Source: Bugula neritina (Eukaryota > Animalia > Bryozoa). Taken from it: a stretch of DNA of 64,000 nucleotides. The translations under genes were made by a program, and so were the position numbers. Each line of letters starts with the position of its first letter. Positions within the stretch are counted from its first letter, which is position 1. Positions 42,101 through 54,100 of the stretch are shown in pieces. The notes under the pieces were generated by a model. The model was given only the letters and a program-made list of their open reading frames with translations. It was not told the origin of the DNA and searched no databases. The stretch is taken from positions 10,818,633 to 10,882,632 of the forward strand of contig OZ037769.1 in NCBI GenBank assembly GCA_964035545.1. The letters run 5' to 3'.

Positions 42101-45100
42101 AAGCTGAATAAAATTACAAAGAATTTGAATGGCAAGAGAGAAATGCTGCTTATTTCCACATTGAGGCAGCAGTGAAGGAAGGCAGCAGCCAGGGGGGGGC
42201 AGCAGTCAGGGGGGGGCAACAGTGAGGGGTTTATTCTCTAGATACAGTATCATTGGTGCTAACAGTGCCTACAACTGATAAGCCTTCAAATGTTTTACAT
42301 AACAACTGTGCAGCTGTGCCTGTTGAACTCTATAAAAAACTTGTTCTAATTCGTGATAATTAATCTGAAAAACTGGACTCCCTGATGCTATACTATCAGA
42401 GGGAAGGAAGCTATTCCGACAGTGATTTGATAAACATGGATGTCTGGTGCGAATATAACAACGGCAGCGATATATTGCAGCCACTGCTGCTAGATCAGAC
42501 ATCCTGCAACAGCTGAGGTGCTCACAGCTCTGCTCAAGGACTTGTACTGCTGACTTGAAGTGATACACCTACAGGCTGGTAATTTGTTCCTTTCATTGTA
42601 TGCTCAAGCAGCGCAGATGCTTTGAATTAAAATAAACAATCTACATCAATGGTTTTCATAAAAAATTCAACCTTTTTTTATTTAGTCAAATGATAAAATG
42701 GTTTGTTTGACCCATGAAATGTGTTAATATGTTCCGTGCATGCTAATGATGTGAGTACAAGATGATTTAGCATTTACCAGCACACGTAACTGAATTATAA
42801 TTTTACTACATAACTTGCAATATCTACAACTCGTTGTGCTCTTTATTGTAATTATTTTTCTAAATTAGTACAATACCTTTGAATTACTTTCTAGGAAACC
42901 GGAAAACTAAGTTAAGAGGATAACATTTACAATTGTGGCAGAGCCTGTGCAGACTGCAAGAAACAGCTCAACGGCAGCATGCATACAGCAGCGGCAGCTC
43001 ACTACCTGCTGGTAACTCTAGTAGTGGGAGTAGCTATAACAACCTGTGATGTCGTGCCGTCAGCTAGGAGAATACGGAGACAAGCACACACATCTCAGGT
43101 GGATGACAGGCCAACAGAGAGCACAAGTAAGTGTATAGTTATTTATGGTCTCTAAAGACACTAAAAACTTTTTATTGAGGAGAGAGCAACTCTAGAAACA
43201 CACACATCTCTAGCCAAGTATCTGTAACATTATTTGTATTTGCTATTAACAATAACCATTTAGCAGTCTATTATAACTTGCATAGGACCACCAGTGGAAA
43301 TTTCTCTCACACCATTTGACAGAGTAGAGGTAGTGGAAGGTGATGATATAACATTTGAATGTAAAATTACCAACAAGCCACAGAATAGCCAGGTATGTTG
43401 TAATCTTGAGCTGAACTATTTTTATTACCCTTACTACAACAGGACCACCTGGTCTGGAGTAAATGCATATCTGGCAGCAGAGGTGCTGTCATGGGCTATT
43501 TATAGCTACTACTCTATTACTATAGTTGTAGATGAAATAAAAATATAAGTTAAACTATCTAGGTTGAGAAATGCAAGGGTAAAAAATTTGAACTTTTCTA
43601 TATTCCTATATTTTATAAAAAAAAGGTAAAAAGTCAAGTCAGCAAAAATGTATTGATGGCATGTCATGTAAATTAGTAAGATGAATGTAGGTTGATTCAT
43701 GAAAACAGTATTAGTACCCTGTACCAGGAGTCACTATAAAACGTCAATCTGCCTACAACACTTATTTGAATTTTCTCTAGAAAATATGTAGAAGGTTTAC
43801 CAATTGTTTTACAGGTTCAATGGTACTATATGATCCGAAACCCCGTGGACAACTCTTTCGACAACTTCACTATTCTAGCCAATGAAGTGGCTACTGTAGA
43901 TCCTAGAAAGTATCGAGTGTGGACACCTTCTCCAAACATTTACTCTTTAAAGGTATGGTTTTGAGAAATGTAAAAACAAAACTGGAATATGTATTGTATC
44001 ATATAGCAAGATTTGGTTTATAATAGTACACTTTTAATGTAATCTTAAATAAAAAATAAAATATCATTTTGCAAAGAAATAAACAAAATTAATGACATAA
44101 GCTAAGCAGGGATGAGAAAATAAAATATTGTGTAGAATTAAATTGCAATACCTGGCCAATAACATTATATTACACCTAAATAGGTGATACTAACCAGCTG
44201 TTGTCTACAGATAAATATATTTCTATTTATTACAAACTTTCTAATTTTTTTTATTCAAAATATATATACAACTTTTGAGTAGCTGGTTGATGCATGGCTA
44301 TATTAACTTTCCATTATGTTGGTGACTTACCTATTAGAGTAAGTTAGGTAGCATTACATAGACCTGAAGTTAGTTAGATAATATACATATACTAGAAGTA
44401 CGTTAGATAATATTATATATACTAGAAGTAAGTTAGATAATATTATATATACCTAAAGTAAGTTAGATAGTATTATATATACTTAAAGTAAGTTAAATAA
44501 TATTATATATACCTAAAGTAAGTTAGATAATATTATATATACCTAAAGTAAGTTAGATAATATTATATATACCTGAAGTAAGTTGAATAATATTACACAA
44601 ATTTCAAGGAAATATAAACCAAATGTATATATTCATTAATTCCATTGCTTACACAACCAGTTTTGTTCGAAGCTTGCCCATCAATTTATCAAGGGAGTTA
44701 TCAAAACTACAACTATAGTAACAAACATATTAAAAACCCCACAACTAGTATTTTATGATAAACAGATTTTATCATAACTTATTTGTTTTCAATGGCAATT
44801 AATGGTAGAATGTATTAGCTAGTACCCATGTGGTACAGGAAAGAGTGGAGATAGATGAGGTAGATAGTATTGACATAGAAGCAACTTGGTCACACAACTT
44901 AGGAAATGGCCTATAGGTAATGTGTCAAACTTCCAGAGAGTAAAGAAGCGGAATTTATATTGTAACTCTAAGTACTGGCTCACCAAACTGTATCAACAAT
45001 TTTCACAATGTTATATAAAATGAGGATCTGTTGAAAGTGAACTATACTAACTATGTATAAAAAATGTAACTTTGAATCATTATGGATATTATTATTACAT

Positions 45101-51100: not shown

Positions 51101-54100
51101 ACAATATGCATCAATTTTCACTAATCATTGTACAAGTAACTGTAACACCCTAAGTTTATTGATATGTAAAGCCACAAAGTTCATACCCAAGTAAACTCTG
51201 AACTATGCCAACTTCGGCCAGCATTCCTTGCTGTGTTTACTACTAATTTGAAAAAGAAGTTTAGGGTTTAGAACATACTTTTTTAAATTGCTGCAAATGC
51301 TGCTGTATTTACTGTATATTTTAAATAGCATTGCTAACTCAAGTGAACTATAAACGACTAAAATATTTTCTTTAAAACACTAATTTAAGACCTTTTGCAC
51401 TTGTATTGAGTAACCTAGAAACTTGTAAAAGACCTCTCTGTTTACATACCAAAGCTGAAATTTTATTCAAATGTCAGCGAAGGACATGGTAGAGTTTAGA
51501 CAGTTTTATAGATCCAGTACCATCAGCGCCCGAACTTTTGTGTACTCATATGTCTATATATTAAATCGAGAGTGCTACAAAATTGCTAGCTCAGAGTATA
51601 TACCTCTGGTAGCTTGCTTTGCTATCAATTCTTGACGATTATAGCATGTCGTTATAGTACAGTCTGTCAACTGCCTGTGAATCTGCCTGTGAAATCAAGT
51701 CTGTCACTGCTAAATATTATGTAGATCTGAAATGAAAATAAGACCCGTATTCTATGTACGCTCCGATCCACCTGCTGCCGATGCTGTCGCTGACACTGAA
51801 GCTGCTACTGAGAGTGCTAGTGATGCAGAAGCACTGATACAAAGAGATCAACCTCAACAACACGCTGCACCAGTTCGACATAAATATAACAGGGCCAACA
51901 CTGGCAAATAGTAAGGTCAAAGGAAGCTGACTGTTGGGAAGCAACATAATCAAATAATTCTTCATGAAAAGACAGAATGCGTTTAGATATTACAGACACT
52001 CTCTAAAACGTCTAAAATTATAAGTATGTTTATCATAAACTAATATATTTTATTTATTTATTATTTTAAATAATGTAATTTTAAAATTAAACGTTTATTG
52101 GCACTTATCTTTTTTTAATGAACCTTGGCTGTAGCTTTATTTTATGACATATATATGTGATGTATATAGGCTTTCAAATAGTTTTGTTAACTATTAATAT
52201 GTTATGCCAAATAAGAATTATTTATGTAGATTTTTTATGCTTGAATTTTTACAGTCTTCTATGAGAGCCGATTGTTTGATTTTCCTTCTTCCATTTAAAG
52301 ATGTCTATTTTGCAGCCTGTAGAATAATTTGACCGTCGATTCAGTTTTCCAATATATGCTGTGCTTACAAAAATCACCGATGACTTTGTGCATAATAAAA
52401 GTTTAGTTCCCACGAGCTAGCTTCATGCATATTAAAGTTGTAGTATTGCCATGCTTGTGCACCATGTAAATGCTACACATTAAACGCTAAAGTACTACGT
52501 TTTCCACAGATGTGTTGGGCTAGTGCGATGTGCATATATACTGTGATTTTATATGCTAACCTTGAACATGCTAAAATTGTGATTACCATGTCACAAATTA
52601 GATTTCTGGTTTCCATGTATTGAGAGTTTCTTAACTGTATGACACATATGACCAGCTATATGACACATATGACCAGCTGTATGACACATATAGCCAGCTG
52701 CATGACACATATGACCAGCTGTATGACACATATGACCAGCTGTATGACACATATGACCAGCTATATGACACATATGGCCAGCAGTATGGCGCATATGACC
52801 AGCTATATGACACATATGACCAGCTGTACGACACCTATGACCAGCTGTACAACACCTATGACCAGCTGTACGAGACATATGCCATGTGACACATACTACC
52901 AGCAGTCTATATAAGCAAATATTAATAGCACTTGGCAACTACATCCTGGCGGTAAAATAATTGAATAGAATTTTATATGCTGCCTTCCCAATTTTCGCAA
53001 TTTCAATATTTTACTGGCGAAATATAGAAGTCATTAGGGAAATATGACCAACAAAATGTAAGCTCAAAAGTACGTTTTTCAGCTTTTTGCTGTTGAGACT
53101 GTGAATACTGAATATAATGTAGTAGCAAGTAGTAGTTTGACAACATTGCACTGGTCATATAATCTAACTCTATATATTCTATAGTCATATAGCCTATAGT
53201 ATATACAGTATCTATGAATAAAATATATAATTAGACTATATTACTATACAACATATAGCGATTATACAGTATATAGACTATAGGCTGTGTAGTTACATAG
53301 ACAAACGGAATATTGCTGGAATAACCCATCAAATGGTTGCCTACTTTTAATCAAAAGCTTCATTTTTATAGAGTTATTGAAAATGAAATTTTCAATACCA
53401 GAAAAGATGAAATTAAAGATGATTTTTACAAGCACCAATGCTGGACATTGTGCTTTCTTGTTGAAAGGAAGTTGGCATATAAAATACTCTTTAATATAAA
53501 ACAAAGTTTCACCTCTTACTATGCTTGGCTACGAGTCTATCTTTGGAATTCTCCTGGGCCACTATTATGACTAGCATTTTATCCAGCTCCATTAAATCAT
53601 AATACAGAGCACCTGCAAGCAATATGAAGATAACTGTACGCACCCCACAACACACCTGCAAGTACTGTAGAAACATCTCCAGGCATCAAAAGTTCAACTC
53701 GTAATATGCACAGAGCTAACGCATGTGAAAGTAATATCTCATAATTATTGTATACATTAATAAATTGTATTCTTATAAAATTATCTTCAAAACAGCTGTC
53801 CTTAACTATTGTAATCTTCTATTACTTCCTGTGAAAAAAAGCAGTTAGCCCATCTTTTATTAAAATTGACAAGAGTGTTAAAGTTTTAAATAAAAATATA
53901 TTTATTGGTAAATTGGGACCGGTACTACTTCATTTAACGACATGGAGTTAGTTATCCATCTTTAAAACAACTCTATGATCAACCAGGTGAAGGTGTCTGT
54001 AATATTCCTTAAAATGCTTGCTTTCATGCAACATTACTTGTGTGTCAGAATTTGAAGAAAAATGATCAATCTCCAACTATATATTTTTCAATATAAAATT

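Follow-up and report, generated by a model that had tools for sequence, protein, structure and literature searches.

A predicted Bugula neritina gene that adds an immunoglobulin domain and a stalk to an angiopoietin-like fibrinogen-domain protein

Secreted proteins that combine immunoglobulin superfamily (IgSF) domains with a fibrinogen C (FBG) domain are, according to reviews, confined to certain gastropods (PMC8878817, PMC12074976), and our literature search found no paper linking bryozoans with IgSF-FBG proteins. A locus of the bryozoan Bugula neritina raises the question of whether one gene joins these domains in a second phylum and, if so, from what it was assembled. The locus lies in a stretch of 64,000 nucleotides of contig OZ037769.1 (assembly GCA_964035545.1, positions 10,818,633 to 10,882,632 of the forward strand), hereafter the window, and all positions below refer to it. 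We consider it likely that window positions 42979-51911 hold one protein-coding gene for a secreted mosaic of 846 residues, in which an immunoglobulin (Ig) domain and a stalk were added to the orthologue of an angiopoietin-like fibrinogen-related-domain (FReD) protein.

A gene model joining Ig and FBG domains

Joining 16 exons of the plus strand (42979-51911) by script yielded 2541 nucleotides, that is, 846 codons and a TAG stop. All introns of this model run from GT to AG with matching phases, and the frame contains no internal stops. An earlier note on this DNA, made from its letters, had described 16 exons and an 846-residue frame, and the scripted splicing reproduced both figures as well as every listed element in the same order, from signal peptide to tail. 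Database searches were run exon by exon, and the spliced model was compared in local scripts only.

The predicted chain opens with a hydrophobic N-terminus, the strongest signal-peptide-like stretch of the region, with a hydrophobic core of 3.0 on the Kyte-Doolittle scale. Its ATG is the first after an in-frame upstream stop, and exon 1 closes on a CAA/GTAAGT donor. RIRR at residues 31-34, inside ARRIRRQ, fits the furin-type R-x-K/R-R pattern, and cleavage there would trim a short propeptide. The Ig domain (residues ~51-165) is followed by a spacer of 242 residues that reaches to residue 407. The spacer starts with a Thr/Pro-rich stretch of 20 residues (166-185; 40% Thr, 20% Pro), beyond which it is rich in Ser, Glu and Lys, and its exons 6-8 matched no Pfam family. 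Next come a Cys motif of 19 residues (405-423), a heptad-rich coiled-coil region (489-562), the FBG domain and an Ala/Asp-rich C-terminal tail of 51 residues. The mature chain carries 11 cysteines; the odd one, Cys144, adjoins the Ig disulfide and may form an interchain bond.

The Ig domain was recognized by its landmarks and by per-exon matches. Cys75 in the B strand, Trp88 in the C strand, 13 residues past that cysteine, and the D139-S-G-E-Y-C-C145 motif stand in the expected order, and the 70 residues between Cys75 and Cys145 are V-type spacing (criterion about 65-75). In the PDB, exon 2 had 36 matches, every one an Ig domain with its A'-B strands in the alignment (titin, E 1.6e-5; DCC, DSCAM), and exon 4 had 35, every one a V- or I-set domain with strands F-G in the alignment (CD226, E 0.0025). 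Residues ~51-165 are thus predicted to be one V-type Ig domain. Searches of the exon-2 open frame and of exon 9, each in a set of 5.8 billion proteins, returned no matches, blanks that are weakened by the length window of that search.

The FBG domain is distributed over five exons. Exons 12 to 15 matched the Pfam profile PF00147 in order (profile positions 4-67, 74-129, 139-173 and 174-207; E 9e-19, 3e-14, 1e-4 and 2e-4), and exon 16 contributes the SEMKIRP end, which orthologues have in common as EMKIRP. PDB matches were fibrinogen gamma for exon 12 (2e-15), angiopoietin-1 for exon 13 (7e-12) and ficolin-2 for exon 14 (3e-5). Both standard disulfide pairs and a DNDND calcium motif are present.

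Orthology of the C-terminal half

To place the gene, exon 12 was searched against 1.84 billion representative proteins, and the model was then compared by local BLASTP with about 290 fetched FBG proteins. Residues ~390-800 aligned with the whole length of four mollusc proteins at 41-44% identity (E 1e-113 to 1e-123): those of Haliotis asinina (techylectin-5B-like, 425 residues, 26-423 aligned), Dreissena polymorpha (KAH3778697.1, 436 residues, 20-426), Pecten maximus (fibrinogen-like protein 1, 418 residues, 30-405) and Biomphalaria glabrata (XP_055890492.1, 462 residues, 28-454), the last with FReDn13 and angiopoietin-related protein 1 as cluster mates. Each has its own signal peptide, Cys motif, coiled coil, linker cysteine, FBG domain with N-C-W and EMKIRP end, and an Ig domain is absent. 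In a maximum-likelihood FBG tree, the bryozoan sequence fell into one clade with the mollusc proteins (UFboot/SH-aLRT 100/99; 99 in a quick tree), as sister to the clade's mollusc and environmental members, the position expected for a 1:1 orthologue. Judged from alignment and tree, the C-terminal ~450 residues are orthologous to an angiopoietin-like FReD that is conserved among lophotrochozoans, the FReDn13-like group. We found no paper on "FReDn13" in the literature, and the papers searched gave no tested function for any member of the group.

The likeness extends to small features. The mollusc proteins share with the bryozoan one the motif C-x-Y-x-x-V-[VI]-N-E-x-D-x-S-x-C-P, the coiled coil, N-C-W in subdomain P, the EMKIRP end, and a linker cysteine paired in position with an extra cysteine of FBG subdomain A. 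However, they measure 418-462 residues and have their signal peptide about 10-30 residues before the motif, whereas in the bryozoan gene this interval is longer by about 380 residues (Ig and stalk, exons 2-8), and the acidic tail is longer as well. Since the mollusc orthologues lack the Ig domain, the N-terminal Ig and stalk residues appear to be a lineage-specific addition.

The exon phases suggest how this addition may have come about. Exons 1 and 4 both end in phase 1, which places the Ig exons 2-4 in the 1-1 class of modules, as would be expected if an extracellular domain had been shuffled; phase 1-1 modules are typical of exon shuffling. In the ancestral form, the Cys motif would have stood right after the signal peptide, as it does in molluscs. 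The bryozoan lineage would then have gained about 380 residues between the two, comprising the V-type Ig domain of exons 2-4 and, after it, the stalk of exons 5-8, which is mucin-like and helical. The earlier note had offered, as one of two options, an independently assembled Ig-bearing angiopoietin-like ligand, and this option agrees with the Ig-less 1:1 orthologues in molluscs, the phase-1 bounds of the Ig module and the single copy reported below. As predicted, the protein belongs to the FReDn13-like orthologue group and carries an N-terminal module that is new to it, which amounts to a genuinely new domain architecture. With the ancestral state still visible in molluscs, the gene would offer a clean, datable example of exon shuffling creating a two-ended secreted binder.

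Conservation in a sibling species and copy number

A cryptic-species complex has been described for B. neritina, as has the assembly tzBugNeri2.1, with 216,009,554 bp in 9 chromosome-scale scaffolds (PMC11480708). We found a Logan contig of 6.1 kb from another sample that covers window positions 44516-50699 at 87% DNA identity and probably comes from another member of this complex. On it, the exons from Ig exon 4 to FBG exon 15 follow one another as they do in the window. Each of the 12 is free of gaps and 92-100% identical, and all 24 splice dinucleotides are kept, with indels in the flanking introns. The ratio of non-synonymous to synonymous substitution rates (dN/dS) was lowest in the FBG domain, at 0.04, and in the Cys motif with the coiled coil, at 0.05; Ig exon 4 and the spacer each came to 0.13. 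The spacer alone showed a synonymous excess (p = 7e-7), which indicates that it is coding in the frame given here.

Two further Logan contigs (3559 bp, SRR25569777; 1458 bp, SRR25569789) derive from a more distant relative and cover FBG exons 12-15, ending short of the region upstream of the FBG exons. Their intron positions are the same, exons 13-15 have 78-87% protein identity, and the introns can no longer be aligned.

The earlier note had also called for a count of paralogs. In the 216-Mb genome, Ig exon 3 and Cys-motif exon 9 each matched only themselves, which makes both single copy. FBG exon matches numbered at least 155, with several tandem clusters (C1, 23.28-23.37 Mb; C4, 19.27-19.41 and 24.24-24.31 Mb; C8, 6.19-6.37 Mb), and the gene, on C5, is a singleton outside them. 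Among the 149 best Ig_3 exon matches, none lay within 15 kb upstream of another FBG exon, in a scan that also missed the gene's own Ig exons. In the Ig_3-FBG pair that came nearest (C7, 1.32 and 1.33 Mb), the two matches stand in the wrong order.

Several points weigh against reading the locus as one gene for an Ig-bearing FReD. The exon joins are predicted from genomic DNA. The sibling contig starts in intron 3, so that the comparison concerns exons 4-15, and the linkage of Ig and FBG exons was compared in this sibling species only. The Ig fold is predicted from sequence landmarks and per-exon matches; exon 2 matched the Pfam families I-set and Ig_3 at E 0.005, under the curated cut-off, and exon 3 by itself had zero matches in Pfam, the PDB and the ESM Atlas. 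Joining exon 1 directly to exon 5, with exons 2-4 skipped, keeps the frame, and an isoform that lacks the Ig domain may for this reason be the main product. In subdomain P, Trp follows the second cysteine where the alignment places His in ficolin-2; the mollusc orthologues have Trp as well. In acetyl-binding FBG lectins, His at that position is part of the acetyl-binding pocket. Because this His is replaced, plain ficolin-like specificity should not be assumed, and lectin activity is uncertain. Finally, every statement about function in this text is inferred.

Possible role of the protein

In angiopoietins, ANGPTLs and ficolins, the chains oligomerize and the FBG heads are clustered. By analogy with angiopoietins and ANGPTLs, the coiled coil and the N-terminal Cys pair of the bryozoan protein could oligomerize its chains, and the clustered FBG heads would then bind in a multivalent, calcium-dependent manner. 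The Thr/Pro stretch may be O-glycosylated and extended, keeping the Ig domains off the core. Placed at the far ends of flexible glycosylated stalks, these would form a second binding surface, and the protein could bridge two kinds of target. Candidate targets are microbial or symbiont surfaces, bound as by a lectin or opsonin, or the animal's own cells and matrix, bound in an ANGPTL-like way.

A non-immune role for the same architecture can be entertained tentatively. The protein would in that case serve development, budding or the maintenance of tissues as a ligand of the angiopoietin or ANGPTL kind, acting in the matrix or in signalling, and its Ig domain would bind a partner on the cell surface. 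Its Cys pair, coiled coil and FBG domain are laid out as in ANGPT and ANGPTL ligands, and the pocket His is replaced by Trp. Furthermore, a single copy, a dN/dS of 0.04-0.13 and a 1:1 orthologue across phyla are unlike the expanded, fast-evolving immune FReD families; such strong constraint and 1:1 orthology would suit a ligand with a housekeeping role no less well than an immune receptor. However, the gene lies outside the ANGPT and ANGPTL1/2 clades, and its exons 9 and 10 match no angiopoietin N-terminal family.

The comparison with the vertebrate proteins reflects both sides. Angiopoietins and ANGPTL1/2 also have an N-terminal Cys pair (a motif of the C-x-Y-x-F/V type), coiled coil, linker and FBG domain, with about 39-43% FBG identity, and angiopoietin-1 is the top PDB match of exon 13. 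Yet they have no Ig domain and no stalk and form separate clades; ANGPT and ANGPTL1/2 are each well supported in our trees, in which deeper relations have no resolution. Tie-type receptor binding cannot be assumed. Searched exon by exon, which is a weaker test, neither exon 9 nor exon 10 matched the angiopoietin N-terminal domain PF25443 (E up to 1). Similarly, ficolins, tachylectin-5A and FIBCD1 show the same canonical FBG fold signature, DNDND and subdomain P disulfide, and ficolin-2 is the top PDB match of exons 14-15, but ficolin-2 has His after the second P-domain cysteine where the bryozoan protein has Trp, and the latter would oligomerize through a coiled coil, not collagen.

Less probable, and on balance unlikely, is that bryozoans evolved an Ig-plus-fibrinogen recognition oligomer independently of snails that sorts microbes, possibly including the vertically transmitted bacterial symbiont of B. 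neritina. Such an oligomer would hold one target by its clustered FBG heads and a different one by the Ig domains on their long glycosylated stalks. If this were true, the FREP principle would have originated twice, the second time by convergence. Bryozoan immunity and symbiont handling are almost unstudied, and the gene provides a defined candidate for recognition studies in this phylum. The weight of this is limited: it is one constrained single-copy gene, known from sequence.

Linkage of the Ig and FBG exons

A different arrangement would leave the Ig exons outside the main FBG product, with exons 2-4 usually skipped or part of a separate transcript, and the gene would then encode a plain long-stalked angiopoietin-like FReD. 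We regard this as distinctly improbable, even though the skip is neutral to the frame, exons 1 and 4 both ending in phase 1, and all mollusc orthologues are without Ig. Exon 4 is 97% conserved in the sibling contig, gap-free and with both splice sites kept, between introns full of indels, and no conserved stop or terminal-exon signal follows it.

The joins further downstream bear on the same question. The acceptor AG of exon 9 lies within an in-frame TAG, so the exon directly follows a stop and requires an exon upstream; exons 8 and 9 need each other, as no interleaved partner is present for either. We also scanned 43127-48159 for a second signal-peptide first exon (ATG-started, hydrophobic, phase-0 donor), and the scan gave only AT-rich, unconserved intron. 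With no other signal-peptide exon between exons 1 and 9, the signal peptide of exon 1 is the only one open to the FBG part; if the Ig and FBG parts were two genes, the former would lack an end and the latter a start. Overall, support for Ig and FBG exons in one predicted transcript is indirect and comes from the splice phases, from conservation and from there being a single signal peptide.

Resemblance to gastropod FREPs

The other option raised in the earlier note was kinship with the FREPs of gastropods. Like the bryozoan protein as modelled from the genome, FREPs (VIgL) are secreted, with IgSF at the N-terminus, an FBG domain at the C-terminus and a helical or coiled part between them. For FREPs, oligomerization via the helical part has been proposed (PMC12074976), as we propose here. 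FREPs carry IgSF1/2 and an interceding region, whereas the bryozoan protein has a single Ig domain, set apart from the FBG domain by about 420 residues that include the mucin-like stalk and the Cys motif, and belongs to a different FBG clade and a different phylum. FREPs form a multigene family; the bryozoan gene is single copy and, at a dN/dS of 0.04-0.13, gives no sign of diversification.

The FBG domain itself points away from FREPs, and kinship with them is not supported. Its identity is 57-61% to the FReDn13-like group versus 38-45% to heterobranch FREP-type domains. In a second tree, which included one FREP named as such by its source (Elysia FREP 3.1) and lacked curated FREPs of Biomphalaria, the FREP-type domains of heterobranchs (that FREP 3.1 along with Elysia and Physella proteins) formed a separate group with 98% support. 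Our trees group the gene with Ig-less mollusc FReDs and leave it outside FREP-type, ANGPT and ANGPTL1/2 sequences, and no multigene family accompanies it.

For the N-terminal half, BLASTP of residues 1-400 against the about 290 FBG proteins, Elysia FREP 3.1 among them, gave zero matches at E up to 10, a comparison limited in that Ig domains can diverge further than BLAST is able to follow. None of the long relatives checked had the Ig-stalk-FBG layout. A profile search with mollusc and chordate relatives, capped at 8000 candidates, showed no Ig family in the 120 proteins listed; it missed several of its own members, and its lack of bryozoan proteins therefore carries no meaning.

Shared descent with the FREPs, with the Ig-FBG architecture ancestral in Lophotrochozoa, is very improbable. 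It would account for the shared outline of signal peptide, IgSF, helical region and FBG domain in two lophotrochozoan groups, bryozoans and molluscs, but Cys motif, coiled coil and FBG domain have their orthologues in an Ig-less mollusc family that coexists with FREPs in Biomphalaria, the FREP-type domains stand apart at 38-45% identity, residues 1-400 resemble none of the FBG proteins compared, the gene is a single copy and not a diversified family, and the literature limits FREPs to gastropods (PMC8878817, PMC12074976). The resemblance is, on these comparisons, best described as convergence and not descent: the Ig-FBG outline would have arisen separately in a second phylum, when an angiopoietin-like gene that was already old and conserved gained an Ig module.

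Least credible of all is a gene-model artefact or decaying pseudogene, its frames joined on paper only; the model was indeed built from sequence alone, but 58 synonymous versus 18 non-synonymous changes over 652 codons against the sibling (p about 1e-20), zero exon indels, all splice sites kept and end-to-end homology with mollusc proteins leave almost no room for it.

A further protein came to light among the FBG sequences. XP_072016507.1 of Amphiura filiformis (631 residues) has a weak Ig_2 match (residues 28-90, E 4e-4, below the cut-off) before two FBG domains, and may be another Ig-FBG combination outside gastropods.

Exon features

The exons of the model are collected in Table 1, together with the comparison of individual exons with the sibling contig. 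Downstream of the stop codon, polyadenylation-type hexamers occur at 175 nucleotides (ATTAAA) and 483 nucleotides (AATAAA). A possible extra exon at 48685-48900 was rejected as intronic, because the sibling species differs there by indels and by substitutions that are mostly non-synonymous.

Table 1. Exons of the predicted Ig-FBG gene (window positions; syn, synonymous changes; non-syn, non-synonymous changes)
Feature	Position (strand)	Residues	Content	Basis	Sibling contig
Exon 1	42979..43126 (+)	1-50	start codon, signal peptide, RIRR dibasic site; ends phase 1		
Exon 2	43286..43392 (+)	50-85	Ig strands A'-B, Cys75		
Exon 3	43815..43952 (+)	86-131	Ig strands C to D, Trp88 in VQWYY; phase 0-0, canonical splice sites		
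Exon 4	45520..45622 (+)	132-166	Ig strands E-F-G, DSGEYCC; ends phase 1		97% identical, gap-free
Exon 5	45848..45987 (+)	166-212	Thr/Pro-rich, mucin-like, then acidic helical stretch	composition	gap-free; 2-bp indel just beyond donor
Exon 6	46865..47017 (+)	213-263	spacer		4 syn, 0 non-syn; 9-15 gaps in flanking intron
Exon 7	47228..47422 (+)	264-328	spacer; heptad-rich stretch 244-288 spans exons 6-7	heptad scan	4 syn, 1 non-syn
Exon 8	47655..47891 (+)	329-407	spacer, terminal ...PPVSGQK, phase 0		95% identical, gap-free; donor conserved, conservation drops right after, no conserved read-through
Exon 9	48160..48378 (+)	408-480	Cys motif, coiled-coil start		10 syn, 2 non-syn
Exon 10	48491..48679 (+)	481-543	coiled coil; weak Pfam matches to coiled-coil families		4 syn, 0 non-syn
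Exon 11	48920..49046 (+)	544-586	coiled-coil end and linker with Cys575; phase 0 to 1		95% identical, gap-free
Exon 12	49210..49401 (+)	586-650	FBG subdomain A (Cys587-Cys616; extra Cys610)		
Exon 13	49507..49689 (+)	650-711	FBG subdomain B		8 syn, 0 non-syn
Exon 14	49943..50054 (+)	711-748	FBG subdomain P, DNDND calcium-site motif, Cys740		100% identical
Exon 15	50156..50266 (+)	748-785	FBG subdomain P, Cys753 then Trp (ficolin-2: His)		
Exon 16	51725..51911 (+)	785-846 and TAG	FBG end SEMKIRP, Ala/Asp-rich tail; phase-2 acceptor		

Genomic surroundings

Two introns of the gene contain tandem repeats. Intron 3 has an AT-rich 30-bp unit in 8.6 copies (44338-44631; also scored with a 90-bp period), and intron 4 has a 45-bp unit in 3.2 copies with 97% matches (45642-45783), which produces spurious open reading frames on both strands. 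At the latter repeat, the sibling contig shows gaps of about 45 bases per 100-bp bin, indicating that the copy number differs between the species. Just downstream of the gene, a 21-bp minisatellite of 11.8 copies (52635-52881) gives rise to a minus-strand open reading frame of 115 residues made of TAGHMCH repeats, most likely not a gene, and a (GA)94 microsatellite at 56559-56746 coincides with long minus-strand frames of Leu/Ser repeats.

The neighbours at 959-2563 (+) and 10939-14306 (+) are ordinary genes. One is an exon of 535 residues that matched the C-terminus of codanin-1 (E 1e-12), and the other exons there matched the helix-hairpin-helix and thumb of DNA polymerase beta type (E 8e-7 and 2e-11).

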